The notes: a model not told the origin generated them from the sequence alone. Counted from the stretch's first letter, positions 334 to 28,245 are shown. The stretch: DNA of 64,000 bases from Lytechinus pictus (GCF_037042905.1 NC_087245.1:38440001-38504000), one strand, 5' to 3'. Program-made: numbers and translations.

Positions 334-1551
334 TTAATAACTCAATTTTTTTGAAACAGTTTTCCGGCATTCTTGTTTAGTTCTGACTTTTTGTGGTTTA
401 TGTGGGCACTCATTGTCAGATTTTCTGCTATTTCTTAATGGTGTCATTTCAATTTGTTTATTTTTATCCTCGGATGATTCGATTTCACTTACATTTAACT
501 CATTGGCTATGGTTAAAAGGCTACTGGGATGTTGAGAACTGTATTGATCCTCGTCACAACTTGAGTCATTAAAGTTTGGTGTGCCGGGATGGGTAGGACT
601 GCTCGATATATTTTTTCGACGCACTACCAAAAGGATTGCTATGATAGGTATTATTAGTATAATCAATGCTACTATAACCCCAAGAATAATAATTATGGTC
701 AACGATCTGGTACTAGTTTTCCCAGTTTTATAGTTCGTTGTAGCGTACTGGTCCCATCTGATAGCATCCGTATCAAGTTTAAAGACGTTTACTGTCGAAG
801 TTTCTGTAATAGGCCTACTTACTGCTATCTCCATACAAAGAGACACGTCAAGGTGATTTATAGTGTGATTTGCCAATTCGCTCGGGTATGAACATACTGG
901 ATTATCAAACCTGACGTATTTCTCGTTGCTTATGGATAGTTGATGATACCACTGACGCAATGGCTCCATGCTGCAGTCGCAATTCAAAGGATTGCCTTTC
1001 AGAAACAGAATTTTGGTGTTGTCTGTCAACACCTCCAAATTCAAATTGTCAAGTTGATGAAGTTTGTTCCATCTCAAATCTAAACGAATGTTCTGAAGAT
1101 AAAGAACATTGCCAATAGAAACCAAACTGTTTCCAGAGAGATTTATGTTCTTTAGGTAATCCATATGTGAAAAGAGATCAATGGATAGAGTTGTGAGAGA
1201 ATTGCTAGAAAGGTCCAGATTGACCAAGGATGAAAGGTCTTTGAAGATATCCTCAGGAAGATTAACCAGTTTGTTCATGCCGAGGAAAAGAAGCTCGAGT
1301 TTCTTTAAATGTTGGAAGACACCGGAAGTGAGTTGGGAAAGACGGTTCTGGTACAGGTCAATGACCTCGAGCTTTGGGACGAGTTGGAAGGTTCCGTTCT
1401 CGATGGCCCTCAGTGAGTTCCTACTCAAGTAGATGTTTTGGAGTCGGTTTTCTGTTCCGTTTAGTGCGTACCGATCGAACACCTGAAGATTGTTGTAGAG
1501 CAGCTTGATCGACTTGAGTTGAGGTGCCCCGATGAATGTATTTGCTTCGAT
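334..1551 (-). CDS. LRR transmembrane receptor copy 1, coding exon 2 (LRR2 end to LRRCT, S/T stalk, TM, cytoplasmic tail)
   Basis: Open frame with LxxLxLxxNxL repeats, NPLNCDC...CSYP...C LRRCT, hydrophobic TM IIIILGVIVALIILIIPIIAILLVV then RRK; acceptor tctttacag|ATC at 1552-1554, stop TAA 334-336; joins exon 3487-3774 in phase 0 (NISH|IEAN), giving about 501 aa. Confidence 0.93.
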   Translation of the reverse strand: MEANTFIGAPQLKSIKLLYNNLQVFDRYALNGTENRLQNIYLSRNSLRAIENGTFQLVPKLEVIDLYQNRLSQLTSGVFQHLKKLELLFLGMNKLVNLPEDIFKDLSSLVNLDLSSNSLTTLSIDLFSHMDYLKNINLSGNSLVSIGNVLYLQNIRLDLRWNKLHQLDNLNLEVLTDNTKILFLKGNPLNCDCSMEPLRQWYHQLSISNEKYVRFDNPVCSYPSELANHTINHLDVSLCMEIAVSRPITETSTVNVFKLDTDAIRWDQYATTNYKTGKTSTRSLTIIIILGVIVALIILIIPIIAILLVVRRKNISSSPTHPGTPNFNDSSCDEDQYSSQHPSSLLTIANELNVSEIESSEDKNKQIEMTPLRNSRKSDNECPHKPQKVRTKQECRKTVSKKLSY

Positions 1552-1984
1552 CTGTAAAGATAGAGTGAGACACATTTGTTCAAAATATATATGTATATAT
1601 GATTTTTATATAAAATAAAAGTGGCATGAAAGACTTTGTAACAAATAACACTATTGTGACGAAATTGCCTGGTTCGAACCAATACCAGAATTGAGTAGGT
1701 TTGAACAAACACTTGGCGCCTGAAAAAAATAATCAGATGGAGTCAAAGAGAAAATGTTAAAGAATAAAGAGAAGAGAAGATGGGAGATGGGTGAGAAGAG
1801 AGAGGGGGGAGGGAAGATGATGGAGGAGAGCATGGAGAGAGAGAAAGGGGGAGGAGGGAGAGAGATCATAATGTGAGCGTTTGCCATTAATCAATTAATT
1901 GGGGGAAATGGTTTCATTTACACAATCTAATACAAAATACAAAGTGGAATATAAGTTTTCAAGGAAAAAAAAACTAAAATAGGA

Positions 1985-2210
1985 ACACTCTTAAAATAGT
2001 TGGGCAAAATATGCCAACTTTTAACCAACCCTCGGCAACATACTGTCCATACAACTATTGGTTAAAATCTGCCTATATTGGGTAATATAAACTAATAATT
2101 GGGTAATAAATTTGCTCAATTTGATAATAATTGCCCAGAATATATAATATAATTTTTACTAACATACATTACCCAACACAGTGGACAGTATGTTGCCCAA
2201 CATTTTAAGT
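1985..2210. mobile_element. Palindromic MITE family (acactcttaaaa..ttgggca)
   Basis: Inverted arms ttgggcaa...ggcaacatactgtcca / tggacagtatgttgcccaac; related copies at 17603-17826, 35209-35435 and more distantly 55001-55200. Confidence 0.75.
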
Positions 2211-3486
2211 TTGTATGCTTATGAGATGTCAAAGTGGAATGAATTCACAAGATAATGCTAGTAGGCCTACACTTCAAATTTCACGTATTTTAAGTTTCTT
2301 TATGTATCCTCTGATCTCCTGTAAATAGTGACTATCAGAACTCTGGATCTAGATCCAAATCAATTTGAATTTAGATTTGAATATGAAATCTTTGTGATTT
2401 AGATATCACTAAAACTATCTGTAGTCAACTTTATTTTGAATCTCAGAATTTCATATCACAAAGATTTGATTTGGGATCAAGACCATAACACAAAATGTTG
2501 GCGATTAATCGCTAAGTGGTGATGGCCAATCCAGATCAATGTTACATTTGTGTTTTGTTCAAAACACTCACTAGAAACCAATCACAGGTGTCCTTTCATA
2601 TTTTGTATTCATCATAAACCCTTGTGTTACTGGGCCCTGATAAAGTAAGGGGAATACCCGGTCATTGTTAACGGTCGTTAATAATAACAATAATGACAGT
2701 TTCATTCTCATTGGTTGCAGTCATTTGAAACCATGCAGTCTCTCGGCGTTCATTGTTGTCTTATGATTAGTCAAATAACGAATGTATTTGAGATTGTTGT
2801 GTTCGAACCAAAAAGGAGTCTGGGTCAAAAAGAAAAATTCTGGTAAATATTTTTACCAACAATTTGGTCAGTTTTTAACAACATTTTGTAGGTTATTCTC
2901 CTGATTTTGTAGCCTCGCACTTCAGGAGAACTACCTGTAATTTTTGCCTATATTGTGTTTATTTTATTGGGGGGGGGCAAATTTCGTGGTAGAAAATTTG
3001 TAAAGAGAAAAAGTTACTTTTATCAGGTTTGTTGTCATTCTGTTGGCATAAATCATAAAATGACATGAACATAGAGCTGCATTTTGGAACCATGGTTTGA
3101 ATAGTCTTGTTATTTATAAGGATTTAATCGATCAGAAAGTTACATAGCACACATTCCATTTAAGTGTTTCCAGATTGGATTATAGCTACAAAATATCACA
3201 TTGTTTTCTGCGGATTACAATCCTATAAGATCAGATGTCATTTCAATATAAACTTATACAGTACAATACGTATCTTAATATGGATGAACGCTCACAATCA
3301 TACAACACAATCATATTTCAAAGTCCATATTTTAAAATGTTTGTTTTTTCCAAACTTATATCATGTAGATATAGGCCTACTTCGCCAAAGATTTAGAAAA
3401 GTCGAGGCACTATAAAATGCATGTTCCTACAAAACATTATACACTTTATAGTTATTCATTCTCTCTTATATAAAGTTTATACTTAC

Positions 3487-3774
3487 ATGTGAGATGTTGT
3501 TGTTTGACAGTAAGAGGTATTTTAGGAAATGAAAACCTCTAAAAATCTCAGGTCGTATTTTTGTGATGTGGTTGTAACGAAGCGATAGATATGAAGCAGC
3601 ATTGCATTCGATTGGTATGGTATCCAATGATCTGTGTTCACAGTTCGCCTGTTGTAAAGCCTCCACGTAAGAGCATTTACGATGACATGGCGAAGAACGT
3701 TGAGTTTCGGTGCTACGGCACATGAATAGTATGATCAAGATTAGTAAAAACTTTTTCAAAGATTGAACTTCCAT
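3487..3774 (-). CDS. LRR transmembrane receptor copy 1, coding exon 1 (signal peptide, LRRNT, LRR1-2)
   Basis: MEVQSLKKFLLILIILFMC signal peptide, CHRKC...C...LDTIP..C cap, LSLRYNHI and LLLSNNNISH; donor GTAAGT at 3486-3481. Confidence 0.92.
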
Positions 3775-4192
3775 TTTAGATATTTCTTGTCCTGAAAATA
3801 ACGATACGTATAAATTCAGCTTTCAAGAGCGTACAAACGCTTAGTTTGATGAAGCACGCTGTGTGTCAAGTAATTGAACTAATTCAAATCTCCCACTCTA
3901 GCACGATTAGTATACATATTCATTACAAGTACAATTCTGCCTGTCTTGTGATTGGCTGTAACCATGTGTCATTCATCTTGTGATCGGGGAAGTGGGAGGT
4001 AACTTTCTTGGGAACTCATTCACTTCGTAGACGAGCACATCATTAATCGTTATCATATTCAATTACATTTAAATCGTAACCGAAATTTGCAACGGTGAAG
4101 CAACCTTTGATTAAGCTTTAACGGTTTTTTCCCAAAGATTCCACACCTTACAAAATACACCCGAAAGCTCTTATTTCTTACTCTCTCAAGAG

Positions 4193-4455
4193 CATTAGCG
4201 GCGGAAGCCCCAAAATTTAGGGGGGTCCACCCGAAATTTTGTGATGGACACAGGTAAAAAATTAAAAAAATTGACAAGCAAAAAAAAAAGGTTATCAACC
4301 AAAATTTTAGGGGGGGGACGCAGGAAACAAAATTGACAAGCAAAAAAAAAAGTTATCAACAAAAAATTTAGGGGGGACCGTCCCCCCCCCCACCTCAAAT
4401 TTAGGGGGGACCTGTCCCCCCGTCCCCTCCCCCCCCCCCGCTTCCGCCGCCTATG
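4193..4455. mobile_element. hAT-like MITE with 8-bp TSD
   Basis: TIR cat(t)agcggcggaagc / gcttccgccgcctatg; TSD ctcaagag at 4185-4192 and 4456-4463; empty site in paralog at about 22973. Confidence 0.9.
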
Positions 4456-4922
4456 CTCAAGAGCATATTGATTGAAATAATGCATATATAGTTCAATCAT
4501 GGCGAAAGAAAATTGTTCAGTTTTCAGATAATTCGTTACTTGATCTATGCCACATTCTTCCAACATCATTAGAAAAGAAAAAAATAATGCATGTACGATT
4601 ACAAGAATAAAACTATAGCCCAGTTTGTCAGTATAGGCCTACTCTCTGTTGTCGTGATATTTTTGTGGTAATTGTTGATAATTCTAGTTCTATTCCGTCG
4701 TTTTGAAGAGAATAATTTTCCGATCATAATCCCGATTCAGAATTATGTGAACCAATAAAGATAAAATTCAGTATTATATCTCTTGGACCACAACATGGCG
4801 AACATCAAAAATTATGTAGTGGGGATAAATAGGTTCGATATTGTAATTTACTTTCTGTCGTTGCTGTTGATGATTACCTTCACCACTTTTCAGAAAATTG
4901 TAAAGAAACGGATACACCTTGT

Positions 4923-5164
4923 CACTAGCGTACCTACGGGGGGGGGGGGCACTCTGCCCCCCTGACGAGTCTCAACCCATGCAAAAACGTATCTTTGCCC
5001 CCCTGACGGGCTTGAAAAACCTTTTTTGCCCCCCCCCCTGACGAGCTTTAAGACCTTTAATGCCCCCCTGACGAGCTTGAAGACCTTTTTTTTTTTTTTT
5101 TGCTTGTAAATTTTTTTGGCGGACGGTTTTGCCCCCCCTGTGGAAAATCCTAGGTACGCCACTG
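4923..5164. mobile_element. hAT-like MITE with 8-bp TSD
   Basis: Ends cactagcgtaccta / taggtacgccactg; TSD caccttgt at 4915-4922 and 5165-5172; empty site at about 23425. Confidence 0.9.
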
Positions 5165-8100
5165 CACCTTGTGCCCCGCCAGAAACCCTGGGTCATCTGC
5201 TTAGAAAAAAGCAAAACTGGGTGTTGCATGAAGATAAATGAAAATATAAGAGCATATTACAAAATCCTCCCTGCTGCTCGCATGACTGGGAGTTCAATGT
5301 TTACAAACGATCATTATTTTTGGCGCAGAGCCAGATACGGTAACCATGGTAATTCCATAAATGAGTGCGTTCATTAATTCAGTCAAGGATTTACAGTTCA
5401 CATTTTCACACAATGGTTCGAAAAGCATCAAATCATGCCTGAAACAGGCTAATACCAGCTTCTATCGGCTCAAATAAAGCATTTAATGATTATCAACCCA
5501 TAAGAAAGGCGTGGTTACTTCGGGCAAAGGGTCATGCATGATCCAACTATTAATTGCAAGATGAAACCTCTCTGGTCTTACACTTTTTCTTTGACTCGGG
5601 CTCTAACTTCTCTCTTTGTTAAATGTAATGTTAGCTTTATTTTTACAATGTTGCTCAACTTAGTTATTAAAAGAGATTTTTATTTATATCAATTACATTA
5701 TTATCAATGATGAAAACAACAGTATGATAATAATAATAAAGGAAGTGAAATATAAGTGAGCATGTGCATGGTGGGAAAATGCCTAATGTATACATATTTT
5801 ATAACATGAATAATTGTTTGCCAGAGTTTTTCTTCATTTTCCGGAGTTTTTTGGTAAAGTTTTATGCAATGGGCCCCTGGTATATTCATACGCAGTAAGG
5901 CTGATTTACCTAAATCAGAAGTTTTCTCGTCATGGATTAGAAAGTTAAAGCTCCATGTTATCGTCATCATCATTATCGTCATCATCATCACCACCATCAT
6001 CGTCATCATTATCGTCATCATCATCAATCCCTTTATCATAAATATCAAAATTATTAGCATTCCTTTTGGCGGATTGAATAACATACCTCTTTGAAAAGTT
6101 GCATATAAAAAATTCCACTAGGATTAAAATCATAGTATTGTATTCTTCATTTATCAATTTTAATTGAAATTTCCTTGATTATCTCACTAAAAATAAGTAA
6201 TAATAATTAAAGAAATCGTTTAGACAGAAATATTGTATATTTAAGTTTTTATTTAAATAACACAACAAAATCACAATTTTTAAAGGATTTACAAGATTAA
6301 AACATAAAATCAAGGATCATACAAGTAAAAAAGAGAGCAGTTTAAAAATAAACAAGATAAATCTTTCAAAGATGAGACTCCGAGAACTACTTACGGATCT
6401 ACCTACTGAAAACAAATATCAAGAACTCAGATCTCTAAAAATGTTTGTTTCCTTATTGTGTTACTACTATTCCCTTAGGGGTGAATAGCTTAATAGAACA
6501 GAAAAAAAAACTTTCCCCATCCACCGTGCCATATACCAGGCATATACTTAGTAAACATGAGTAGGCTATATAAACGGGTCAGCAAGGTGAACTAGTATTG
6601 AATATCTAAAAGCAAGCTAAAATTCGACTTTAACACATTCACTGATGACTCGATTCGAACAGAGTGAAGTATAAATGTAAGTTTTCATGACATTTGCTCC
6701 GGCGACAATTGCTCCAATGGAAAATCTGCTCGTTAAGCCAAACATAAAAGCTTAACTCCAAAAACTAAATGAACCCTAATCCTTATAGTTCCATTGCTCT
6801 GAACCAAAAACTCTATTACTATCCTAAATGTACAATGCCCTCTAAAATATTAAGACCGGAGAAAATAGGCCTACAAAAATCCAACTGACCACTCATTGTT
6901 AGAATGTAACACCACTGGTCACTAAGGATGTATGGATGCATGCAGGTCTGTTTATACAATAACTATACTTGGTTTGAGAGGTGGATGCGGAGACCAATGA
7001 GGATGCGTGTGTGGACGTGTGGGTGTGTATGTGTGTGTCTGTACGTGGTATGAAATGATGTGTAAGAGTTTGTGTGTGGGTGTATGTGTGTGTGTGAAAT
7101 TGGGTGAAGATGTGTGTGTGTGTGGAGTGTGGTTGGTGAACAGGGATGTATTGTGTCAATATAGCTCGACTTGGCACCGGTATCAAATATTAATTCTAGA
7201 AAACCTAATATTTTTCAGTTAAAATCACGGCAATACATTTCAATTCCAATTTTAAAAATACATCAAAATGTCCATTTCGTTTTCATTCTGTAGTTATATG
7301 ACTATGAATAAATAATGCAATGAAAAACAGTCCAAAACGTCAATGAAAACAAAGTTTAGCAGAAATAATAACTGATAAAATCTCTTGATACTTTTGTTCG
7401 GACACGTTAGAGCAATAGTTTGTATTTTTTTTAAGTAAAAAGGTGAAATTTCACTACAAATTTGGAAAATTCTTTATATATCATGAAAATTTAGTAAACA
7501 TTCTTCTTTATACCTGATACTGCACTGTAAATTTATTCAACATAATGTCGACAGTTATGACAGTGTAACTTCAGCCAACAGGTTTTCAGCCTATCAAATG
7601 TTTTGAAGTCCATGTACGCCTTATGTTAAACATTTAAAATATAACATCCTATATAGTACAAAATATTCGCCAGCAATGAAATTACCGTTTCTTCCATATC
7701 ACTACATAATTATTTACACTAATGGAATTTTTTTGTGCCATGAGGGTATAGATTTGTGGATTAAATACTTTCATATTGCTTATTATTTTTCTGTATATAT
7801 TTATGTCTAATCTACTCCCAACCGTGCATACAAAAAAATATTTTCAAACAATATTATTGTGATATTTACAATTATACATTTATACAGAGAAAGGAAGGCG
7901 TGTATTCTCTGAAAGGCTTAAAAGGTATAAATACATTGCACATCATAATTGAAGGTGAAGAGAACATTGAAGAGTAATGATAGGAAAAGGCACTTGGAAG
8001 AAAGTAGAGAAGGCTGAATCACCCATAGACTAATTGCAACAAAATAAGATATTGGCAGGATTTTAGTTCCAATATATAAATACATGTATATTTACAACCG

Positions 8101-8625: not shown

Positions 8626-8812
8626 NNNNNNNNNNNNNNNNNNNNNNNNNNNNNNNNNNNNNNNNNNNNNNNNNNNNNNNNNNNNNNNNNNNNNNNNNNN
8701 NNNNNNNNNNNNNNNNNNNNNNNNNNNNNNNNNNNNNNNNNNNNNNNNNNNNNNNNNNNNNNNNNNNNNNNNNNNNNNNNNNNNNNNNNNNNNNNNNNNN
8801 NNNNNNNNNNNN
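8626..8812. other. Assembly gap (N run)
   Basis: 187 N bases. Confidence 1.
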
Positions 8813-8920: not shown

Positions 8921-10138
8921 TTAAAAACTCAATTTTCTTCGTGTGCTTTCCCTGCTCTCTTGTTTAGTTCTGTCTTTTTGTGGTTTATTTGGACACTCAT
9001 TGTCAGAGTTACTGCTATTTCTTAATGGTGTCATTTCAATTGGTTCAGTTTTGTCCTCGGATGATTCGAGTACACTTAACCCGTTGCCCATGAATACAAG
9101 GCTATTAGGATCTTGTAAACTGAATTGGACCTCGTCACTCTTTGAGTTATTAGAGTCTGCTGTGCTTCGGTGGGGATTCTGGGGAGGACTGCCCGAATTG
9201 TTTTTTCGAAATACTACATAACAAATTACTATGATGATAGATACTAGTATAACCAGTGCTACTGCAACCCCAGGAATAATTTTAGACAATGATTTAGTAT
9301 TTGTTTTCCCAGTTTCATAGCTCGTTGTAACGTATTGGTCCGTTCCAATGTCATTCGTACCAAATTCAGCATTATAGACGCTTTCTTTCGATGTTTCTGT
9401 ACTGCTTACTGCTATCTCCACGCACAAAGACACATTGATGAAATTTATCGTGTAATTTGCCAATTCGCTCGGGTATGAACATACTGGATTATCAATCTTG
9501 ACGTCCTTCTCGTTGCTTATGGATAGTTGTTGATACCATTGACGCAATGGCTCCATGCTACAACCGCAATGCCACGGATTGCCTTTCAGAAACAGAATTT
9601 CGGCGTTGTCTGACAAGACCTCCAAAGACAAATTGTCAAGTTGATGTAGGTCGTTCCATCTCAAATCTAAACGAATATTCGGAAGATGAAGAACATTGCC
9701 AATAGAAACCAATCGGTTTCTAGAAAGATCAATGATCATTAGGTAATCCATATGTGCAAAGAGATCGCTGGAAAGAGTCGTCAGATAATTGTTGGACAGC
9801 TCTAGGTAGACCAAGGATGAAAGGTCTTTGAAGATATCCTCAGGAAGATTAACCAGTTTGTTCATGCCAAGGAACAGATGTTCGAGGTTCTTTAAATGTT
9901 GGAAGACACCGGAAGTGAGTTGAGAAAGGCGGTTCTGGTACAGGTCGATGACCTCGAGCTTTGGTACGAGTTGGAAGGTTCCGTTCTCGATGACTCTCAG
10001 TGAGTTCCTGCTCAAGTAGATGTTTCGGAGTCGGTTTCCTGTTCCGTTTAGCGCGTACCGATCGAACACCTGAAGATTATTGTTGAGTAGCTTGATTGAT
10101 TTGAGTTGGGGTGCCCCGATGAATGTATTTGCTTCAAT
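8921..10138 (-). CDS. LRR transmembrane receptor copy 2, coding exon 2
   Basis: Paralog of copy 1 exon 2; acceptor tctgtatag|ATT at 10139-10141, frame open to TAA at 8921; LRRCT NPWHCGC, TM IIPGVAVALVILVSIIIVICYVVF, tail ends RRKLSF. Confidence 0.93.
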   Translation of the reverse strand: MEANTFIGAPQLKSIKLLNNNLQVFDRYALNGTGNRLRNIYLSRNSLRVIENGTFQLVPKLEVIDLYQNRLSQLTSGVFQHLKNLEHLFLGMNKLVNLPEDIFKDLSSLVYLELSNNYLTTLSSDLFAHMDYLMIIDLSRNRLVSIGNVLHLPNIRLDLRWNDLHQLDNLSLEVLSDNAEILFLKGNPWHCGCSMEPLRQWYQQLSISNEKDVKIDNPVCSYPSELANYTINFINVSLCVEIAVSSTETSKESVYNAEFGTNDIGTDQYVTTSYETGKTNTKSLSKIIPGVAVALVILVSIIIVICYVVFRKNNSGSPPQNPHRSTADSNNSKSDEVQFSLQDPNSLVFMGNGLSVLESSEDKTEPIEMTPLRNSSNSDNECPNKPQKDRTKQESRESTRRKLSF

Positions 10139-11670: not shown

Positions 11671-11675
11671 GAAAC

Positions 11676-11706
<31 letters not shown>

Positions 11707-11802: not shown

Positions 11803-12081
11803 ATGTGAAATGTTGTTGTTTGATAGTAAGAGGTATTTTAGGAAAGGAAACCCTCTAAAAACACCAGGTCGTATTCTTGTGATGTGGTTGTAACGAAGCG
11901 ATAGATACGAAGCAGCATTGCATTCGATTGGTATAGTATCCAATGATCTGTATTCACAGTTCGCCTGTTGAGAAGCCTCAACGTATGAACATTTACGATG
12001 ACATGGCGAAGAACGTTGAGTTTCGGTGCTACGGCACATGAAAAGTATTAGTAAAAACTTATTCAAAGATTGAACCTCCAT
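11803..12081 (-). CDS. LRR transmembrane receptor copy 2, coding exon 1
   Basis: MEVQSLNKFLLILFMC...LLLSNNNISH, 93 codons, donor GTAAGT at 11802-11797; spliced product about 498 aa. Confidence 0.92.
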
Positions 12082-15859: not shown

Positions 15860-16987
15860 TCAGCAGATAGATTCTGAAGGTATAAAGTTGAGTTTTTTGC
15901 TACACCTTTCAACATTTTTTTCTTTGTTCAGAATTTCTTTCTCTGGTGTTAACATTTTGCCTCCATGAGACGTATTGTCGAATTGTTCGCGAGGCTTTAA
16001 AGGTATGCTTACATTTAGCTCATCACTGCCTGTTTCATCCGAATGTCTCTTTCGAAACTTTATCACAATGATTACTATAACCACAATCAGAATGGTAAAT
16101 GCTACTACAACTCCAACGATCACAATCAATAATTTATCATCTCTTTTTCCACTTTCAGCTCTCTCTGTGACAGAATCTTGGTACTTTGATACGTTCTTGT
16201 CAATTCCAACATTATCATTATTATGGAATTCATTGTTAGAAGTCAAGGGAAGGGAAGTTGATGTAGAAGTGCACAAAGATACGTTAAGGTAATTGATAGT
16301 GTGATCTGCTAATTCGCTCGGGTACGAACACACTGGATCATCAATCTTGACGTCCTTATTGTTGCTTATGGATAGTTGTTGAAACCATTGACGCAATGGC
16401 TCCATACTACAGTCGCAAAGCCAAGGATTGTCTTTCAGAAACAGAATTTCGGCGTTACTTGTCAAGATCTCCAAGGTCAAATTGTCAAGTTGATGAAGTT
16501 TGTTCCATCTTAAATCCAAACGAATATTCGGAAGATGAAGAACATTGCCAATAGAAATCAATCGATTACCAGAGAGATCAATGGTCATTAGGTAATCCAT
16601 ATGTGCAAAAACATTAATGTAAAGAGTTGTGAGAGAATTGTTGGACAGGTCTAAGTAGACCAAGGAAGATAGGTCTTTGAAGACATCCTCAGGAAGATCA
16701 ACCAGTTTGTTCATGCCGAGGAAAAGACGCTCGAGGTTTTTTAAATGTTGGAAGACACCGGAAGTGAGTTGAGAAAGACGGTTCTGGTACAGATCAATAA
16801 CTTCCAGCTTTGGTACGAGTTGGAAGGTTCCGTTCTCGATGACTCTAAGTGAGTTCCTACTCAAGTAGATGTTTCGGAGTCGGTTTTCTGTTCCGTTTAG
16901 TGCGTACCGATCGAACACCTGAAGATTGTTGTAGAGCAGTTTGATAGACTTAAGTTGAGGTGCCCCGATGAATGCATTTGCTTCGAT
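15860..16987 (-). CDS. LRR transmembrane receptor copy 3, coding exon 2
   Basis: Acceptor tctttacag|ATC at 16988-16990; IEANAFIGAPQ... LRRs, NPWLCDC LRRCT, different stalk, TM LLIVIVGVVVAFTILIVVIVIIVI, tail ends KKLNFIPSESIC. Confidence 0.93.
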   Translation of the reverse strand: MEANAFIGAPQLKSIKLLYNNLQVFDRYALNGTENRLRNIYLSRNSLRVIENGTFQLVPKLEVIDLYQNRLSQLTSGVFQHLKNLERLFLGMNKLVDLPEDVFKDLSSLVYLDLSNNSLTTLYINVFAHMDYLMTIDLSGNRLISIGNVLHLPNIRLDLRWNKLHQLDNLTLEILTSNAEILFLKDNPWLCDCSMEPLRQWFQQLSISNNKDVKIDDPVCSYPSELADHTINYLNVSLCTSTSTSLPLTSNNEFHNNDNVGIDKNVSKYQDSVTERAESGKRDDKLLIVIVGVVVAFTILIVVIVIIVIKFRKRHSDETGSDELNVSIPLKPREQFDNTSHGGKMLTPEKEILNKEKNVERCSKKLNFIPSESIC

Positions 16988-17160
16988 CTGTAAAGATAGA
17001 ATGATATACTATTTGTTCAAAACACATGTATAAAATACAACTGACATGAGAGACTTTGTAACAACTTACATAATTGCCTGTTGTAGTTAATTTTGTAACA
17101 AAATTACCGGGTTCGAACCAATAACAAAATTGAGTAGGTTGGAAAAAAACACTTGGCGCC

Positions 17161-17333
17161 CACTAGCGTACCTACGGGGGGGGGGGGGGGGGGTGGGGGG
17201 CAGAGGGGCAGTCTACCCCCCCCCTGACGAGCCACCACCCATGCATGTATCCCTGCCCCCCTGACGAGCTTGAAAGACCTTTTTGCCCCCCCCCCCCCGA
17301 CGAAAATCCTGGAAAATCCTAGGTACGCCACTG
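17161..17333. mobile_element. hAT-like MITE, same family as 4923-5164
   Basis: Same termini; TSD ttggcgcc at 17153-17160 and 17334-17341; empty site at about 1713. Confidence 0.9.
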
Positions 17334-17961
17334 TTGGCGCCTGAAACAAAATAATCAGATGGAGTAAGGAGAAAATGTTAAAGAATAAAGAGAAGAGAAG
17401 ATGGGTGAGAAGAGAGAGAGGGAGAGGGAGGGGGGAGATGATGGAGAGAGAGGGGGAGGGAGAGATATCATAATGTGAGCGGCCACCGCTCACAATGTTT
17501 GCCATTAATCAGTTAATTGGGGGAAATGGTTTCATTTACACAATTTAATACAAAATACAAAGTGGAATATAAGTTTTCAAGGAAAAAAAACTAAAATAGG
17601 TACACTCTTAAAATAGTTGGGCAAAATATGCCAACTTTTAACCAACCCTCGGCAACATACTGTCCATACAACTATTGGTTAAAATCTGCCTATATTGAGA
17701 AATAAAAACTAACAATTGGGTAATAAATTTGCTCAATTTGATATAATTGCCCAAAATATATAATATATTTTTTAATAACATACATTACCCAACACAGTGG
17801 ACAGTATGTTGCCCAACATTTTAAGTATGCTTATGAGATGTCAAAGTGGAATGAATTCATAAGATAATGCTAGTTACACTCTAAATTTCACGTCTTTAAG
17901 TTCTTTTATGTATCCTCTGATCTCCTGTAAATAGTGACTATCAGAACTCTGGATTTAGACC

Positions 17962-19371
17962 CAGGGGCGGAAATCCCAGGGGGGACGTGTCCCCCCTACT
18001 CAAAATAGTAGGGTGGACACAATATCAAATGTCCCCCTACTATTTGTGGTCTTTTACGATGGTAAGATATACATCATTCAAAATCGAAATAAAACATGTA
18101 TTTCAGGACGAGATGGCCTTACTTTTGGGATGATTTTTTGTTTGCTTGTCAAACTTTTTGTTGTGCAGAGGTCAGCAGGTCAAAATAGGGAACTTAGTCT
18201 CGAATGTTCGTGTCACCAGCACTGGTGTACCACAGGGCTGCGTACTATCCCCAGTGCTTTTTTCAGTTTATACAAATGACTGTGTATGCGCAGGTGACAA
18301 CTGTGTAATGATAAAATACGCGGACGACACAGTCATAACGGGGTATATCCGATCGAACGATAATGCCGACTCTTACTTTTCAACTATTCAACGGTTCGTT
18401 GATTGGTGCGATAACCACCATTTACAACTAAATGTAGCCAAAACGAAAGAAATGGTGATACATTTTCATAAGAACACCCATATAGATCACGTGCCCCTTT
18501 GTATCAAGGGCACTGCTGTCGAGCAGGTTAGTGAGTATAAATACCTTGGCACTACCTTATCATCTAAGTTAGACTGGTCAAGTAATGTTAGTGTTATACA
18601 GAAGAAATGTAACCAAAGGCTCTTTTTCCTCAGACAACTAAGGAAAATACGTGTTGATAGCACTCTCCTTGTCTTGTTTTACAAGTCAATTGTTCAGTCA
18701 ATCTTAATATTTAATTTCATTTGTTTCTTTGGTAATTTGACATCTGCTAGCAAGAAAAGACTAGAAAGAATAAGGAAAACTGCTCAACGTATCATCGGGA
18801 AAGAATTGCCAAGCATTGAAGATACATATGTTGATCGAGTCCTCCTGAAGACCCTACACACCCCTTTTTTATTTATTACAACTACAATCGATCGGGAATT
18901 CGTTTGTGCGTCCCTCGCACTAAGCGAAGTCGATATAGATTCTCATTTGTACCAGACTCAATTCACATATTTAACAGTAGGGCAAGATGAGGTCAAACTG
19001 CCTTGTAGGCTGATGTATCTTAGATGGGAGGGGTTGGGGATCAGTCCCCTGGGAACAGCATGTTACTTATTTAATTCATGTTTATATAACCATTAAAATA
19101 TTTATTTAGTCATAACGCCATTTTGCTGTTATATACTGTCAATTATCATTTATTGGTATACATTGTATTTGTTTTTGTAAATTTGTTGGTAACCAGCGAG
19201 CACCAAATTTCCATTTGATTGGACAATAAATGAATTCAATTCAATTCAATTCAAATTTATTTTCGTCGAAATGACTTTAAATCTTAAATTTGGGGTGATA
19301 ACTTCTTTTTTTGCTCGTCAAATTTTCCAGCCTCTTGTCCCCCTACCTTTTGGGATAAATTTCCGCCCCTG
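17962..19371. mobile_element. hAT-like MITE carrying a nested LINE
   Basis: TIR caggggcggaaat / atttccgcccctg; TSD tttagacc at 17954-17961 and 19372-19379; empty site at about 2348. Confidence 0.88.
18149..19253 (+). mobile_element. 5'-truncated non-LTR retrotransposon (Rex1/Babar-like), RT C-terminal part
   Basis: GVPQGCVLSPVLF, KYADDT, LNVAKTKEM, YKYLG, QRLFFLRQL; frameshift near 18855-18870 with true end RSGIRLCVPRTKRSRYRFSFVPDSIHIFN; AATAAA then (AATTC)n tail; clade is an inference from motif style. Confidence 0.88.
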
Positions 19372-20278: not shown

Positions 20279-22075
20279 TTACCTTGCCTCCCTTTATGGC
20301 CATGCGTTTTGAGTTGGGCCCATTTCCGTTATAACTCAAATTTTCCTCCAAACTCGCATCGTTTCATACAATTGTATTTGTTCTTATGTTTTACATCCTA
20401 TACTTATACCCATAAAAATATATATATTCTGAAAGAAAATTGTCTGAGGAATTCAAAAATGCAATCAGAAAAGGCACAGGGTAATGTCTTTAAAAGTTAG
20501 AGGTAAAAATATGTGGAAAACTGTGAAAAAATATACTTCCCAATATACCTTATGAGAAAAACTTTACACTCCATAGGAAAATAACATGCATATTTCAACT
20601 CTTGAGAGTGAGACTTTTCCAATGATATATCACTTGTTAGGGATAACTCTAACCAAAATAATTGCGCAATCATCTTTTAAGACAAAATTTCACATCACAA
20701 TTGTTTTGGTACATATGTAAAAATGTCTGATTTACCCCCAAATTATGTAGTCTTGCCTTTAGTTGCATGAATATACTTGCAAACACTAACAATTATATTA
20801 TAATATATTTACTGTGGTTATTATGAATAAAATATGATTTGACTCAAATCGTGAGATTTGTCATCTCTTGGCTCAAAGACCGGTGGACGAAAGGTTGACA
20901 ACTGAGAGTCAGGTTTAACATACACGCAAATGTAGGAAAAATGTGAAAGTACAATGAAAAATTCTCAGAAGTGCTTTAGCTTAAACTTGGTGTGAGCAAA
21001 AACAACTAACATATTATAAATAAATTCATTTATCTTACAGCTGGCAAAATTACTTCGATTGTGTTATTTTATAGTGTTATGTTTTAAATATACCCTCTTG
21101 CTCGACATTCTGCAGGACATGGTATCTTGGTACTGGGTCAATTGAATGTCAATGCCAATACAAAAGGCATTCTATGGGTACAATTGAATTGCCTCTGTTT
21201 TAGTGTAATATCAGTGTCGTTCTCAAGTAGTTTTTTGATAAATGGGAAAATATTCACTGAACACCTTTGTGCCAGCCAAATAAGTGTCGTCAAATTGTAA
21301 TGTGTCACCTACTGATTCATAAACGCAATGTAATGTAACATTAAGAAAAAAGAATAAATGACATTAGATGAGGGCTTTATTGCTACAAACAAGTTTTCAG
21401 CAATCACAATTGCATAAAAGGTGCACTGGCTATTTGTTGTTACCAGAATAATCTGAAGATTCGGACACATGAAAGTCATCATTGTCAGTCTACACTCTCA
21501 AAATTGAAACCATGATGTCATAATTAACAATAGATTGATTTCTCTCTTAAGTCTTTAATTTTAATTTGTGCTTTTAAAATTTTTGCAGCTTCTAAATTTT
21601 GTTGAAGGTGTAACCCACATCTAGGCCCTATATTTTATCTCTCCTCATTTTCTTTACATCAGACAGTACTATTTTCATTCGTGGTAATTTCATGATTTAC
21701 ATCAATTAATTATAGTAATTAGCTTAATTAGGTATCTTTTGAACTTCAGTTCAAATTTGACTCACTTATCATTAAAAAATAAGCCAGGGAGCCCCAAAAC
21801 TATTACATATTTAGGTACTGTGATGTTATATATTAAGTTTCTTAATGAAATAAAGATTCATGCTCCCCTCGTCTACCACCATGCAAAACTGGCCAATTGA
21901 TTTAAATAATTGGTAAATACTGGTTAATGAAGTAATGTCAGATCTTTAAAGTAATTGGTATGAAGATTCCCTTTGATGTGATACCAAATGTAGCACATGT
22001 TTTTAAAGTTTTATACCATTCTGTGCTTGTCGCGCAAATGTAACGAACACAACGCATGGTGTTAAACAGTTAATG
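20279..22075. mobile_element. About 1.8-kb insertion in copy 3 intron, probable non-autonomous DNA transposon
   Basis: Absent from paralogous intron (about 3245-3280); degenerate inverted ends ccatgcgtt / aacgcatgg, right end at TTAA; no ORF. Confidence 0.55.
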
Positions 22076-22269
22076 GGGATGAACGCTCACAATCATACAA
22101 CACAATCATATTTCAAAGTCCATATTTTAAAATGTTTGTTTCCAATCTTATATGATGTAGGCATACTTCGCCAATGAATTATACAAGTCGAGGCACTATA
22201 TACTGCACGTATCTACAAAACATTATACCCTTCACATTCATTTTCTCTTATACCAAGGTTAATACTTAC

Positions 22270-22557
22270 ATGTGAGATGTTGTTGTTTGATAGTAAGAGG
22301 TATTTCAGGAAAGGAAAACCTCTAAAAATCTCAGGTCGTATTTTTGCGATGTTATTGTAACGGAGCGATAGATACGAAGCAGCATTGCATTCGATTGGTA
22401 TAGTATCCAATGATCTGTATTCACAGTTCGCCTGCTGAAAAGCCTCGACGTAAGAGCATTTACGATGACATGGCGAAGAACGTTGAGTTTCGGTGCCACG
22501 GCACATGAATAGTATGATCAAGACTTGAAAAAACTTATTAAAAGATTGAACTTCCAT
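22270..22557 (-). CDS. LRR transmembrane receptor copy 3, coding exon 1
   Basis: MEVQSFNKFFQVLIILFMC...LLLSNNNISH, 96 codons, donor GTAAGT at 22269-22264; intron 16988-22269 expanded by TE insertions; product about 471 aa. Confidence 0.92.
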
Positions 22558-24361
22558 TTTAGATATTTCTTGTCCTGAAAATAACGATACGTAGAAATTC
22601 AGCTTTCAAGAGCGTACAAACGCTTAGTTTGATGAAGCAAGCTGTGTGTCAAGCAATTGAATTAACTCAAATCTCCCACTCTTGCATGATTAGTATACAT
22701 ATTCATTACAAGTACGATTCTGTATGTCTTGTGATTGGCTGTAACTATGCGTCATTCATCTTGTGATCGGGAAGTGGGAGGTAACTTTCTTGATGCTCAT
22801 TCACTAATTCGTAGAGGGGCAAATATCATTAATCGCTATAATATATTCATTTACATTTAAATCGTAACCGAAATTCGCAAAGGTGAAGCAGCGCTTTGAT
22901 GAAGCTTTAACGGTTTTTTCCAAAGATTCCACACCTTACAAAATAAACCCGAAAGCTCTCATTTCTTATTCTCTCAAGAGCATATTGATTGAAATAATGC
23001 ATTTATAGTTCTATCATGGTGAAAGAAAATTGTTTAGTTTCAGATAATTCGTTACTTGATCTATGCCACATTCTTCCAACACCATTAGGAAAGAAAAAAA
23101 AATACATGTACGATTAATACAATAAAACTATACCCTAGTTTGTCAGTATAGGCCTACTCTCTGTTATCGTGATATTTTGTTGGTAATTATTGATAATTCT
23201 AGTTCTATTCCGTCATTTTGAAGAGAATAATTTTGCGATCATAATCCCGATTCAGAATTATGTGAACCAATAAAGTTTAGTATTATATCTCTTGGACCAC
23301 AACATGGCGAACATTAAAAATTATGGAGTGGGGATAAATAGGTTCGATATTGTAAATTTACTTTCTGTCGTTGCTGTTGATGATTACCTTCACCACTTTT
23401 CAGAAAATTGTAATGAAACGGATACACCTTGTGCCCCGCCAGAAACCCTGGGTCATCTGCTTAGAAAAAAGCAAAACTGGGTGTTGCATGAAGATAAATG
23501 AAAATATAAGAGCATATTACAAAATCCTCCCTGCTGCTCGCATGACTGGGAGTTCAATGTTCACAAACGATCATTATTTTTGGCGCAGAGCCAGATACGG
23601 TAACGGGACGGTAACCATGGTAATTCCATAAATGAGTAAGTTCATTCGTTCAGTAAAGGGTTTACAGTTCATATTTTCACACAATGGTTCGAAAAGCATC
23701 AAATCATGTCTGAAACAGGCTAATACCAGCTTCTATCGGCTCAAATAAAGCATTTAATAATTATCAACCCATAAGAAAGGCGTGGTTACTTCGGGCAAAG
23801 GGTCATGATCCAACTATCAATTGCAAAATGAAACCTTTCTGGTCTTACACTTTTTCTCTGACTCGGGCTCTAAATTCTCTCTTTGTTAAATGTAATGCTA
23901 GCTTTATTTTCACAATGTTGCTCAACTTAGTTATTAAAAGAGATTTTTATTTATATCAATTACATTATTATCAATTATGAAAACAACAGTATGGTAATAA
24001 TAATAAAGGAAGGGAAATATAAGTGAGCATGTGCATGATGGGAAAATGCCTAATGTATACAAATCTTATACCATGAATAATCCTTTCGAAACGTAGTAGT
24101 ATCATTATAATATTAAAACTAAATAACAATAGTGTCATTTTGTCGTATAAATATAAGAATAAAAAAAATTATCCATCCCAAGAAAGGAATTACGGGGCAG
24201 TAATAATTGTTGGTACTATATATGTACTTGGTAATGTATGTCATTTTGATATAATTATGAATATTAAAATAAATTATTCGCATTGCATCAGCGCCGTTCT
24301 CATGATTTGGGAGCTCACAGCCTACTAGCCCACGGCGCAGAATTTTGAACTTCGCGTTCTT

Positions 24362-24498
24362 CTGGGGCCCGTTGCATAAAACTTTTGCCATAACGAACTC
24401 TTTTTAATATGTAATTTTCAATGGCATAATTTTTGCCAGTTTTTTTTTTTCATTTTCCAGATTTTTATTGGCAAAAGTTTTATGCAACGGGCCCCTGG
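24362..24498. mobile_element. Palindromic MITE (gggcccgtt..cataaa type)
   Basis: ggggcccgttgcataaaactttt / aaaagttttatgcaacgggcccc; only the right arm survives in paralog at about 5820-5880. Confidence 0.75.
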
Positions 24499-27099
24499 TA
24501 TATTCATACGCAGTAAGGCTGATTTACCTAAATCAGAAGTTTCCTCGTCATGGATTAGAAAGTTAAAGCTCTTTGTTATCGTTCTCATCATTATCGTCAT
24601 CATCATCATCATCACCACCACCATCATCGTCATCACCACCCTCATCATTATCATCATTCCCTTTATCATAAATATCAAAATCATTAGCATTCCTTTTGGC
24701 GGATAGAATAACATACCTCTTTGAAAAGTTGCATATAAAAAGTTTTAAAATTCCACTAGGATTAAAATCATAGTATTGTATTTTTATTTATCAATTTCAA
24801 TTGATATTTCCTTGATTATCTAACTAAAAATAAGGAATAATAATAAAAGAAATCGTTTAGACAGAAGTTTTGTATATTTAAGTTTTTATTCAAAAAACAC
24901 AACAAAAATTACAATATTTATTAAGGATTTACAAGATCAAAACATAAAATCAAGGAACATACAAGAAAAAAAGGGCAGTTTAAAAGTAAACAAGATAAAA
25001 CTTTCAAATGAGACTCCGAGACGGAATTACTTACGGATCTACCTACTGAAAAAAATTATTAAGAACTCAGATCTCTAAAAATATATTTTTATCCTTATCG
25101 TGTTACTACTATTCCTTTAGGGGTGAATAGCTTAATAGAACAGAAAAAAACTTTCCCCTCCCACCGTGCCATATACCAGGCATATACTTATTTCTACTTC
25201 ACTTACTTTTACTTTTATCCAACGATGCTTATTGTAGGACTGTCACTATGCCTGTTCATCGGTCCTAGGGAATAAACTGTATGCTCCACACTATCAGTTT
25301 CAATTAGTTGCATGTGGCAAGATATAAAATCCATTACTCAAAGTCATACACAAAAGCAATATCCTTAAACATAATAGTAGGCTATATAAAAAGGTCAGCA
25401 AGGCGATCTAGTATTGAATATCTTATAGTAAGCTAAAATGCAACTTTAACACATTCACTGATGACTCGAATCGAACAGGGTAAAGTATAAATGCAAGGTT
25501 TCATGACATTTACTCCGGCGACAATTGCTCCAATGGAAAATCTGCTCGTAAAACATAAAAGCCTAACTCCAAAAACTAAATAAACCCTCATCCTTATAGT
25601 TACATCGTTCTGAACCAAAAACTCTATTACTATCCTAAATGTACAATGCCCTCTAAAATATTAAGGCCGGAGAAAATAGACCTACAAAAATCCAACTGAC
25701 CACTCATTGTTAGAATGTAACACCACTTGTCACTAAGGATGGATGGATGCATGCAGGTCTGTTTATACAATAACTATACTTGGTTTGAGAGGTGGATGCG
25801 GGGACCAATGAGGATGTGTGTGTGGACGTGCGGGTGTGTATGTGTGTGTCTGTACGTGGTATGAAAGGATGTGTAAGAGTTTGTGTGTGGGTGTATGTGT
25901 GTGTGAAATTGGGTGAGGATGTGTGTGTGTGTGGAGTGTATGGTGTGGTTGGTGAACAGGGATGTATTGTGTCAATATAGCTCGACTTGGCACCGGTATA
26001 AAATATTAATTATAGAAAACCTAATATTTTTCAGTTAAAATCACAGCAATACATTTCAATTCCAATTTAAAAAATACATAAAAATGTCCATTATTATGAC
26101 ATGTAAAACATTTTATTTTCATTCTGTAGTTATATGACTATAAATAAATAATGCAATGAAAAACAGTCCAAAACGTCAATGAAAACAAAGTTTTGCAGAA
26201 ATAATAACTGATAAAATCTCTTGATACTTTTGTTGGGACACGTTAGAGCAATAGTTTGTATTTTTTTTAAGTAAAAAGGTGAAATTTCACTACAAATTTG
26301 GAAAATTCTTTATATCATGAAAATTTAGTAAACATTCTTCTTTATACCTGATACTGCACTGTAAATTTATTCAACATAATGTCGACAGTTATGACAGTAT
26401 AACTTCAGCCAACAGGTTTTCAGCCTATCAAATGTTTTGAAGTCCATGTACGCCTTATCTTAAACATTTCAAATATATGATATGATAATATAATACAATC
26501 CTATATAGTACAAAATATTCACCAGCAATGAAATAACTGTTTTTTCCATATCACTACATATTTATTTAAACTAATGACATTTTTGTGCCATTGGGGTATA
26601 GATTTGTGGATTAAATACTTTCATATTGCTTATTATTTTTCTGTATACATTTATGTCTAATCTACTCCCAACCGTGCATACAAAAAAATATTTTCAAACA
26701 ATATTATTGTGATATTTACAATATTATTATACATTTATACAGAGAACGGAAGGCGTGTATTCTCTGAAAGGCTACATTGCACATCATAATTGAAGGTGAA
26801 GAGAACATTGAAGAGTAATGATGAGAAAAGGGACTTGGTAGAAAGTAGAGAAGGCTGAATCACCCATAGACTTATTGCAACAAAATAAGATATTGGCAGG
26901 ATATTAGTTACAATGTATAAATACATGTATATTTACAACCGTGTTATACTGGAAACATTTTAACTGAAATAATAGTAGATGAAGGTTCCGCCCCTAGGAA
27001 CAGTGTAATGATAACAAAATATCAATTGTGTTGTGGCGACACCTTGTATTCATATTTAAATATCCATTATGTATTGAGAACCACCAAACTGATATCTGT

Positions 27100-28245
27100 T
27101 TAAGAGTCTGAATCGTCGAAAAAGCAGTTCAAATTTCTCTTACACTTGTTTATTTCGAGTTGTGTCCCACTTAAACGTTTGTTGCTTTTCTTTGAAGGTG
27201 TGGTTGGTGGGTTGGGTCTTTGGGACGGGAACTTACTTGGGGTGCTATCCCCACGATCACAGTGCACTTTTATGGCAGGTTCTTTAAAAGGCACTACAGG
27301 TTGTTCATTGTTTGAATTTCGAAAAGGTAAGGCATTATTTATTTTTCTAAGAGCTCTGAGCGAATAATAAACGTAGGCAAAAAGAATACACAAAGGCACC
27401 AAAACCACAAATACGTAATATGAGGAGCTCGGTATTACACTAATATTGTCATCTCGTCGCGTTATATACGAATTATTTTTATTATTTGGCTTTTTATCGT
27501 CAGTTAGATTCCTAACCATGATAACCTTGTTTTGAAGATCCTGACATGTCTGATTGATGAACCCTTTCATAGGATGGCTAGTTAGATCACTAGGACTGGT
27601 ACAGACTGGAGAATCGATGATGTTACAGAATGGGGACACTCGGAGACATCCTGAACGAAAAGGCTGTAAAGAACAATCACACACCCATGGATTACCCTCT
27701 AAGTACAACATCTCAACATGACTGAACCAGGTTTCATTGCCGAGATGCTGTAACCCGTTCTCACGTAAATCCAACCTCTCAATATGTGGAAGAGAAAAAA
27801 CATTGCCATGAATGTCCATCAACCTGTTCCCAGACAAATCAAGTTTTCTCAATTCTAACAGATTGATAAAATGGTTGGATTCAACGGTTTCTAACAAATT
27901 GTCCGATAAATCTAAGAAGATCAACGATGACTCGTCCATGAATATGTCTCTGGGTAGAGTCACTAGTTTGTTCATGCGGAGGTTAAGATATGTAAGATTC
28001 CATAAATGTTGGAAGGTGGTATTGCTTAAGTTAACAAGGTAATTCCACGAAAGATCGATGCGCCTTAGTGCCGGTGCTTGTTGAAATGTTGTCTCTTCTA
28101 CAGCTACCAGGTAGTTCCGTCCAAGGTAGATGTTCTGGAGGTTATCTGAGCCATTGAGTGCAAACTGGCTTAAGGTATTTATGTTGTTATACATCAAGTC
28201 TATGGTCTCCAGTTGTGGTGCTCCAGTAAAAGTGTTTGCACTTAC
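27100..28245 (-). CDS. LRR transmembrane receptor copy 4 (divergent paralog), coding exon 2
   Basis: Acceptor ccttttcgtag|GTA at 28246-28248; VSANTFTGAPQLETIDLMYNN aligns to IEANTFIGAPQLKSIKLLYNN; LRRCT NPWVCDC...VCTSP...C; TM YYVFVVLVPLCILFAYVYY; stop TAA 27100. Confidence 0.9.
   Translation of the reverse strand, partial: VSANTFTGAPQLETIDLMYNNINTLSQFALNGSDNLQNIYLGRNYLVAVEETTFQQAPALRRIDLSWNYLVNLSNTTFQHLWNLTYLNLRMNKLVTLPRDIFMDESSLIFLDLSDNLLETVESNHFINLLELRKLDLSGNRLMDIHGNVFSLPHIERLDLRENGLQHLGNETWFSHVEMLYLEGNPWVCDCSLQPFRSGCLRVSPFCNIIDSPVCTSPSDLTSHPMKGFINQTCQDLQNKVIMVRNLTDDKKPNNKNNSYITRRDDNISVIPSSSYYVFVVLVPLCILFAYVYYSLRALRKINNALPFRNSNNEQPVVPFKEPAIKVHCDRGDSTPSKFPSQRPNPPTTPSKKSNKRLSGTQLEINKCKRNLNCFFDDSDS

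Follow-up and report, generated by a model that had tools for sequence, protein, structure and literature searches.

The window analysed here, 64,000 nucleotides from the sea urchin Lytechinus pictus (GCF_037042905.1, NC_087245.1:38440001-38504000), contains four head-to-tail genes on the minus strand, each with two coding exons, which encode type I membrane proteins with leucine-rich repeats (LRRs). The ectodomain of these proteins is under purifying selection, while the stalk, the transmembrane (TM) helix and the cytoplasmic tail drift almost freely, except for two islands within the tail: a Thr-Pro-x-Lys/Arg site (TPx[KR]) and, close to the C-terminus, a motif composed of basic residues, a Leu and an aromatic residue. 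Judged from the way they evolve, both islands are taken to be functional short linear motifs (SLiMs). It is possible, and is proposed here tentatively, that the two form a bipartite module recognized by a cyclin and its cyclin-dependent kinase (CDK). The C-terminal motif would dock in the hydrophobic patch (MRAIL groove) of an A-, B- or E-type cyclin, and docking would put the upstream Thr-Pro-x-Lys/Arg into the active site of the CDK. The tail would then be phosphorylated, or the cyclin-CDK held at the membrane, when the kinase is active and able to reach the membrane, e.g., during mitosis. We consider this reading more probable than any single rival, but not than the rivals combined.

Architecture and relatives of the family

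The proteins of the family comprise ~500 aa and are built from a signal peptide, an LRRNT domain, about nine LRRs, an LRRCT domain, a stalk, one TM helix and a disordered tail of 64-111 aa. Pfam recognized LRR families only (LRR_8 E-values of 1e-23 to 1e-34) and no TIR or other cytoplasmic domain. In the AlphaFold2 (AF2) model of copy 2, the LRR solenoid had a predicted local distance difference test (pLDDT) score of 85-97, the TM helix spanned residues 382-407, and the tail scored 27-33; the tail is thus predicted to be disordered. The Pfam result and the AF2 model bear out a preliminary description of this DNA, made from the sequence alone, which had proposed a TIR-less family of LRR type I membrane proteins. 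With a signal peptide and a single TM helix, the topology we infer would leave the disordered tail accessible in the cytosol.

The closest solved structures to the ectodomain were those of IGFALS (3.7e-65), LGR4 and LRRC15 (2.4e-36), and the gene names assigned by NCBI are “LRRC15-like”. Orthology to vertebrate LRRC15 was nevertheless rejected, as the best matches beyond echinoids were generic LRR proteins of ~30% identity. Vertebrate LRRC15, LRRTM, LRRC32/GARP and IGFALS-like proteins share the LRRNT-LRR-LRRCT-TM plan of the ectodomain and the Pfam families (LRR_8 etc.) with the sea urchin proteins; however, identity outside sea urchins does not exceed ~30%, and the tails are unrelated, those of the vertebrate proteins carrying PDZ ligands or nothing comparable to the urchin tails. 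The Toll-like receptors of sea urchins are likewise LRR type I membrane proteins encoded by large tandem families in the same genome, with 27-33% identity over the LRRs. In contrast to them, the present family has no TIR domain (Pfam returning LRR families alone), two coding exons and a short disordered tail (64-111 aa), and identity as a Toll-like receptor was rejected. In L. variegatus, an “LRRC15-like” gene (LOC121417626), the top marker of spine type, and an LRR gene next to it that is uncharacterised rank among the best markers for telling secondary from primary spines (PMC11574069); they may or may not belong to the family described here.

In database searches, members of the family came up in L. 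pictus, L. variegatus (P0021) and S. purpuratus (P0022) alone. They returned no orthologs beyond these three sea urchins, the next matches being generic LRR proteins ~30% identical. By these searches, the family is echinoid restricted, and it is tandemly duplicated. Just beyond the window, the same genome contains two further copies, one with a tail of the copy 3 type (L003; type 3) and one with a tail of the copy 2 type (L005/L006; type 2) whose exon 2 carries a frameshift. In this sixth member (G000:C1:38414719-38415922), the LRR-coding part of exon 2 falls into two reading frames, yet the tail (..TPLR..RRKLSF) is still open; it is either a pseudogene or the product of an assembly error. A reverse-transcriptase fragment (RVT_1, 3e-15) lies inside the 5.3-kb intron of copy 3 (window 18146-19096, plus strand), and the same fragment adjoins L003 (L003:3784-4140); the segmental duplication that links the two is therefore recent (dS about 0.03-0.04). 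The nearest outgroup in the genome is a distant paralog 14 Mb away (C1:24.03 Mb), which has a short basic tail without either motif. Two L. pictus proteins from the “nr” source, P0004 and P0005, are not encoded in this assembly, where their best match reaches 83% and covers the ectodomain only, which suggests that the cluster varies in copy number or between haplotypes.

From S. purpuratus, three more tandem copies were read from genomic loci L035 and L036 (AAGJ06000007.1, about 23.43-23.54 Mb), where a thioredoxin-domain gene flanks the cluster. The corresponding NCBI proteins P0001 and P0002 are chimeras that fuse LRR blocks of adjacent tandem copies and fragments; the true units have two exons, as in L. 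pictus. A maximum-likelihood tree separated the family into two old clades, copy 4 and its orthologs (clade 4) versus all others, each of which contains both Strongylocentrotus and Lytechinus members.

Two slowly evolving islands in the tail

All tails follow a common plan: a juxtamembrane basic patch, a variable and often acidic stretch, a first site (TP1, T-P-x-[KR]), a second variable stretch, a second site (TP2, x-P-x-K), a third variable stretch and the C-terminal motif. The latter has the consensus [C/V]-[KRS]-[KR]-[KN]-L; counted from the Leu, its aromatic residue stands at +1, +2 or +4. In every tail, the motif is found within about 14 residues of the C-terminus, and its Leu is 18-38 residues downstream of TPx[KR]. 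Among 12 aligned tails, the TP1 column holds Thr in 11 and both Pro and Lys/Arg in all 12, and at least one TPx[KR] is present in 13 of 13 tails. Only some members have Thr ahead of the Pro of TP2; copies 1 and 2 have Lys instead, L. variegatus has Arg and the clade-4 member of S. purpuratus has Pro. In both ancient clades, the orthologs from L. variegatus and S. purpuratus retain the two motifs, the C-terminal one as CRKNLF and CRRNLFDDF in S. purpuratus and as CKRNLNDSF in L. variegatus.

The positions at which the preliminary description had placed the motifs were exact in all four tails (Table 1). When each tail was shuffled at constant composition, 2-20% of the shuffles contained TPx[KR], 0.5-1.5% had [KR]xLx0-1[FY] among their last 15 residues, and at most 0.1% had the two in this order. 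Its notion of one TP site shared by the copies had to be abandoned, however, because the site of copies 1 and 2 is TP1 and that of copy 3 is TP2, which occupy different alignment columns. Copy 4 does not fit [KR]xLx[FY] either, its motif being R-N-L-x-x-F-F with aromatic residues at +3 and +4. Finally, what had been taken for three barely alignable types of tail are homologous sequences, which can be aligned via intermediates, i.e., the S. purpuratus copies and P0004, a protein that has both TP sites and bridges the tail types.

Pairwise dN/dS was 0.1-0.25 for the LRRs and LRRCT and 0.4-0.8 for stalk/TM and tail, exceeding 1 in the youngest pairs, for which counts are small. Identity of the tails is just 20-33% between clades or species. 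The median site rate (IQ-TREE) of well-occupied tail columns was 1.70, compared with 0.50 for the LRRs. The slowest tail columns belonged to TP1 (Pro 0.28, Thr 0.29, Lys/Arg 0.41), to TP2 (Pro 0.47, Lys 0.41) and to the C-terminal motif, with 0.53 for Leu and 0.57 for the residue preceding it (Lys/Asn). By these rates, the TPx[KR] site and the near-C-terminal basic-x-Leu-aromatic motif are, as had been proposed, the sole strongly conserved cytoplasmic features. Synonymous codons vary between the copies at the conserved residues (Leu TTG/CTC, Cys TGT/TGC, Pro CCA/CCT, Thr ACA/ACC); therefore, the constraint acts on the protein.

The same data bear on whether the motifs might be functionless, their similarity being left over from shared ancestry and from gene conversion among tandem genes of young age. 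Some members are indeed recent paralogs—copy 3 and L003, with their low dS and shared retroelement fragment, being a case in point—dN/dS of the tail is near or above 1 in recent pairs, and both motifs have suffered losses (the Thr of TP1 in copy 3, the aromatic residue in S. purpuratus copy A). However, the motifs persist across clades whose tails are 20-26% identical and whose synonymous sites are saturated, as well as between species at a dS of about 0.85; they evolve at the site rates of the LRR core, and the codons of the conserved residues differ synonymously. We thus regard it as improbable that they lack a function.

Candidate partners of the C-terminal motif

The last 20 residues of 13 tails were scored against the patterns of several motif classes. 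Of the interface with a cyclin or protein phosphatase 1 (PP1) that had been suggested for this motif, the cyclin part (Cy/RxL) proved to be the best-fitting class compared, while the PP1 part did not hold. The PP1-docking pattern RVxF ([RK]x0-1[VIL][^P][FW]) is matched by copies 2 and 3 of L. pictus and their close relatives, but by only six of the 13 tails; copy 1 (because of its Tyr), all S. purpuratus proteins (N-L-F) and all clade-4 proteins, including that of L. variegatus, fail to match. The motif predates the split between the two clades, so what was conserved is something other than RVxF, and docking of PP1 is very improbable.

Another set of readings would make the motif a docking (D) motif for a mitogen-activated protein kinase (MAPK), a class II PDZ ligand, or a C-terminal switch for protein kinase A (PKA) and 14-3-3. 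RRKLSF and KKLSY at the extreme C-terminus do match the basophilic-kinase/14-3-3 mode III and the phi-x-phi PDZ patterns, and the TP sites would be suitable for a MAPK. However, the MAPK D-motif (a basic cluster, a spacer of 2-4 residues and phi-x-phi) was present in four tails, the class II PDZ ligand in three and the C-terminal PKA/14-3-3 pattern in three; the Ser of the motif is Asn, Ala or absent elsewhere, and several tails extend past the motif. This set as a whole appears quite improbable. PDZ ligands of class I or II, which were checked alongside the other classes, fit at most six of the 13 tails and were rejected as an explanation of the tail motif.

Rather unlikely, but with more in its favor, is a trafficking signal, i.e., export from the endoplasmic reticulum (ER) by COPII through a C-terminal hydrophobic or aromatic residue, or another kind of sorting, in which case the TP site would be an unrelated phosphosite. 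Type I membrane proteins often leave the ER by means of C-terminal aromatic or Val signals, the motif lies 1-13 residues from the C-terminus throughout, and the tails end in or near Leu, Phe, Tyr or Val. In contrast, the canonical retrieval signals KKxx/KxKxx were found in none of the 13 tails, the conserved Cys and the dibasic positions are foreign to known COPII signals, and in four tails nine further residues follow the aromatic one.

The determinants of RxL binding are known from a screen of ~100,000 peptides on 11 human cyclins (PMC12356897). Relative to the Leu (P0), P-2 is basic, Arg being better than Lys, and a hydrophobic residue (Phe > Trp/Tyr > Leu) is found at P+1, P+2 or P+4, P+3 alone being unsuitable; P-4 is small, non-polar and buried (Ala, Val, Ile, Cys), and P-3 favours Lys, Arg, Val or Cys. 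In the P+4 (helical) type, Asn, Ser or Cys is favoured at P-1, and binding gains from acidic residues downstream (PMC12356897). The core of this motif, a basic residue two positions before the Leu and an aromatic one at +1, +2 or +4, is present in 12 of the 13 tails, the exception being S. purpuratus copy A, and the core plus the preference at P-4 in ten; a common RxL regular expression matched nine. Eleven tails carry Cys or Val at P-4, eight have a basic residue and five a Ser at P-3, and all clade-4 proteins have Asn at P-1. In S. purpuratus, the aromatic residue directly follows the Leu (+1); L. pictus types 1-3 (KKLSY, RKLSF, KKLNF, KKLAF) have it at +2, and the Lytechinus clade-4 motifs (RNLNCFF, RNLNDSF) at +4. 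With Asn at P-1 and acidic residues downstream, the latter resemble the cyclin-A2-binding GMNC peptide RNLSSEF, and, in terms of the screen, S. purpuratus C-R-R-N-L-F resembles a type 1 and Lytechinus R-N-L-x-x-x-F a type 3 motif (PMC12356897). Shuffled tails matched the three-spacing core in 1-3% of cases, and in 0.1-0.4% when P-4 was included, versus 1-5% for RVxF and 3-10% for the D-motif; the three-spacing RxL pattern is no looser than the rival patterns.

Known carriers of Cy/RxL motifs among CDK substrates and inhibitors (p27/p21, Cdc6, E2F1, the Rb family, GMNC) resemble the urchin tails in that the full CDK consensus [ST]-P-x-[KR] stands N-terminal of [RK]-x-L within a disordered region and that the aromatic residue can take the +1, +2 or +4 position; most but not all of the urchin tails also agree with them in a small non-polar residue or Cys at P-4 and in a basic P-3. 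Model CDK substrates carry the docking motif 20 residues downstream of the SP site (PMC7809796), which is the order in which TPx[KR] and the RxL-like motif occur in the tails. The extended RxL form with a small non-polar P-4 was absent from 29 unrelated tails of other LRR-TM proteins. A search of PDB sequences with the tail peptide yielded a single chance match to a ribosomal protein.

The islands could also be functional SLiMs for some other or undescribed partner, the TPx[KR] being phosphorylated by another proline-directed kinase (MAPK, CDK5-type or GSK3-primed) and the C-terminal motif binding an uncatalogued adaptor. Conservation alone does not name the partner, most matches to the RxL consensus fail to bind cyclins, and kinases close to the membrane are better placed than nuclear cyclins. 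On the other hand, no class compared fits as well as RxL types 1-3, and the cyclin groove is known to accept an aromatic residue that moves between +1, +2 and +4 while Leu and Cys stay in place, which is unusual for other pockets. This alternative is to be taken seriously, although we consider it unlikely; if the partner does differ, the family is still a clean example of two short motifs under selection in an otherwise neutral tail.

In favor of the cyclin-CDK module thus stand the conservation of both motifs, the detailed fit to measured determinants, including the shifts in spacing and the Cys, and the right order and distance. A predicted complex adds to this. The cyclin A gene of the L. 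pictus genome was located at L037, in the exon bearing the MRCILVDWLVEV patch; for the prediction, the cyclin box of a 465-aa cyclin A (P0083; 92% identical to L. pictus over the L037 exon) was combined with the last 40 residues of copy 3, and three controls were run. The modeling of cyclin A with a tail peptide, which the preliminary description had put forward as a check, was passed against the controls, though weakly: ipSAE was 0.48, 0.52 and 0.49, compared with 0.00-0.01 for the three controls, and the runs shared at least 65% of contacts, but with this tool a pass at or below 0.60 is wrong more often than right unless the pair is likely beforehand, and the tool is uncalibrated on peptides. 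The complex was graded “weak support”, with a partner pLDDT of 46-50 and a score that gives no placement in the MRAIL groove, and its passing may reflect memory of solved cyclin-RxL complexes. The prediction may accordingly be credited with a small upward shift for the cyclin reading only.

These limits of the complex weigh against the cyclin-CDK module, and they do so together with a number of other points. The strict RxL consensus ([^EDWNSG][^D][RK][^D]Lx0-1[FL]x0-3[EDST], taken from PMC12356897; ELM class DOC_CYCLIN_RxL_1) matched four of the 13 tails, the others missing it because they have a Tyr, the +4 spacing or a motif that runs to the very C-terminus, and in the human screen less than 15% of strict consensus matches bind any cyclin (PMC12356897). 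In S. purpuratus copy A, the motif has decayed through insertion of a codon and an exchange of Phe for Asn, by which the aromatic residue was lost. Copies 1 and 3 of L. pictus have the weaker Lys at P-2 and Ser at P-3, so that several urchin copies are suboptimal compared with known Cy/RxL motifs, and the copy 2 type has Thr at P-4. Among the 29 unrelated LRR-TM tails, five, all from one family, had SPxK 15-50 residues ahead of a loose RxL match, which means that loose pairs of this kind are cheap. The constant position near the C-terminus hints at trafficking or at recognition of the C-terminus, as cyclin docking needs no such place while trafficking or PDZ-type signals do. RNA run X8 yielded zero reads. 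Furthermore, a plasma-membrane LRR protein is an unusual carrier of a Cy motif: known carriers are soluble nuclear or cytoplasmic cell-cycle proteins, whereas the putative urchin Cy motif lies at the C-terminus of a single-pass LRR surface protein.

There is a precedent for a surface receptor whose cytoplasmic tail is a cell-cycle-dependent substrate of a cyclin-CDK (PMC8473786): LRP6 is phosphorylated at G2/M by membrane-tethered cyclin Y-CDK14 (PMC8473786; PMC4874687). It differs from the present proteins in belonging to the LDLR family and in its site, which is PPP[ST]P rather than TPx[KR]; no RxL docking has been described for it, and Caprin-2 is said to scaffold LRP6 and cyclin Y. A description of an LRR receptor with a tail of the TPx[KR] plus RxL type was not found in the literature.

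Bipartite SPxK plus RxL modules are well known in soluble cell-cycle proteins; to our knowledge, coupling to the cell cycle of this sort is undescribed for any LRR receptor. If the tails are true docking substrates, they would represent the first family of LRR surface receptors wired directly to the core cell-cycle kinase and a natural case of all three RxL spacing types interchanging inside one gene family, which would be useful for understanding control of the cell surface by the cell cycle in a classic cyclin organism and the evolution of docking motifs. The proteins might also serve as membrane-tethered cyclin docks, their p27-like C-terminal motif recruiting or sequestering cyclin-CDK at the cell surface. 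This more specific idea is doubtful; were it true, an extracellular ligand or adhesion would be coupled to the cell cycle, or mitotic CDK would switch adhesion.

Gene models and other features of the locus

In all four copies, a short exon 1 encodes the signal peptide, LRRNT and the first LRR and ends at the donor CAT/GTAAGT or AAA/GTAAGT; the acceptor is CAG or TAG, and the long exon 2 behind it contributes all further LRRs, LRRCT, the stalk, the TM helix and the entire tail (Table 1). Splice sites are canonical in the gene models. The spliced models of copies 2, 3 and 4 are identical to the NCBI L. pictus proteins P0003, P0007 and P0020, respectively, copy 2 matching P0003 residue for residue. 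For copy 4, RNA confirms both transcription and the modelled splicing: a 1633-nt contig from run X6 joins positions 27055-28239 to 28910-29357 and thereby lacks the intron at 28246-28915, skipping 670 nt with GT..AG ends on the minus strand (the position of the cut is ambiguous by 6 nt). No record was found of contigs encoding the protein P0009. Copy 1 appears intact (a 501-aa model with canonical splicing), yet it has no identical entry in the protein database, and of its sampled words just 5-7% occur in public runs. The gene may have escaped annotation, be expressed at a low level or have arisen very recently. The assembly gap in the window was dismissed as a threat to the finding because it lies 3′ of the stop codon of copy 2, and no coding sequence or motif spans it.

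Table 1. Coding exons, tail motifs and assembly gap in the window (positions counted from its first nucleotide).
Feature	Position	Strand	Remark
Copy 1 coding exon 1	3487..3774	-	signal peptide, LRRNT, first LRR; donor CAT/GTAAGT
Copy 1 coding exon 2	334..1551	-	LRRs, LRRCT, stalk; TM 622-702, tail 337-621, stop 334-336
Copy 1 TP1, T-P-L-R	433..444	-	among slowest tail columns
Copy 1 C-terminal motif, V-S-K-K-L-S-Y	337..357	-	type-2 RxL-like, with Tyr as aromatic residue
Copy 2 coding exon 1	11803..12081	-	spliced model equals P0003
Copy 2 coding exon 2	8921..10138	-	TM 9209-9280, tail 8924-9208, TAA stop 8921-8923
Copy 2 TP1, T-P-L-R	9020..9031	-	sequence
Copy 2 C-terminal motif, T-R-R-K-L-S-F	8924..8944	-	type-2 RxLxF core; P-4 is Thr, not Cys/Val
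Assembly gap (N)	8626..8812	.	108 nt 3′ of copy 2 TAA stop, outside all coding sequence
Copy 3 coding exon 1	22270..22557	-	NCBI model P0007 begins at second Met, 22506
Copy 3 coding exon 2	15860..16987	-	TM 16061-16132, tail 15863-16060
Copy 3 TP1 relic, I-P-L-K	15995..16006	-	Thr lost; paralog L003 retains T-P-L-K
Copy 3 TP2, T-P-E-K	15938..15949	-	not homologous to TP1 of copies 1/2
Copy 3 C-terminal motif, C-S-K-K-L-N-F	15884..15904	-	type-2 RxL-like, Cys at P-4; used in complex prediction
Copy 4 coding exon 1	28916..29233	-	gene model and spliced RNA contig
Copy 4 coding exon 2	27100..28245	-	TM 27358-27420, tail 27103-27357
Copy 4 TP1, T-P-S-K	27232..27243	-	retained in L. variegatus; TPIK in S. 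purpuratus
Copy 4 TP2, T-P-S-K	27190..27201	-	Thr not retained in L. variegatus or S. purpuratus
Copy 4 C-terminal motif, C-K-R-N-L-N-C-F-F, then D-D	27118..27144	-	type-3 RxL-like: Asn at P-1, Phe at P+4

Repeats are found in and around the cluster. An element with the translation “..AYLGFS..GGGG..KLVRG..” plus poly-Pro occurs on the minus strand at 4893-5192, at 17107-17508 and at L003, in or beside several of the cluster genes, and is probably a dispersed repeat. On the minus strand at 38026-39810, a 594-aa open frame encodes the reverse transcriptase of a non-long-terminal-repeat retrotransposon (RVT_1, 2e-37). A long low-complexity tract occupies 60812-61708, with GC and AT skews of 0.34 and 0.37 over 60-62 kb; its pseudo-open reading frames are rich in Ser, Leu, Phe and Pro on one strand and in Lys, Glu, Arg and Gly on the other.

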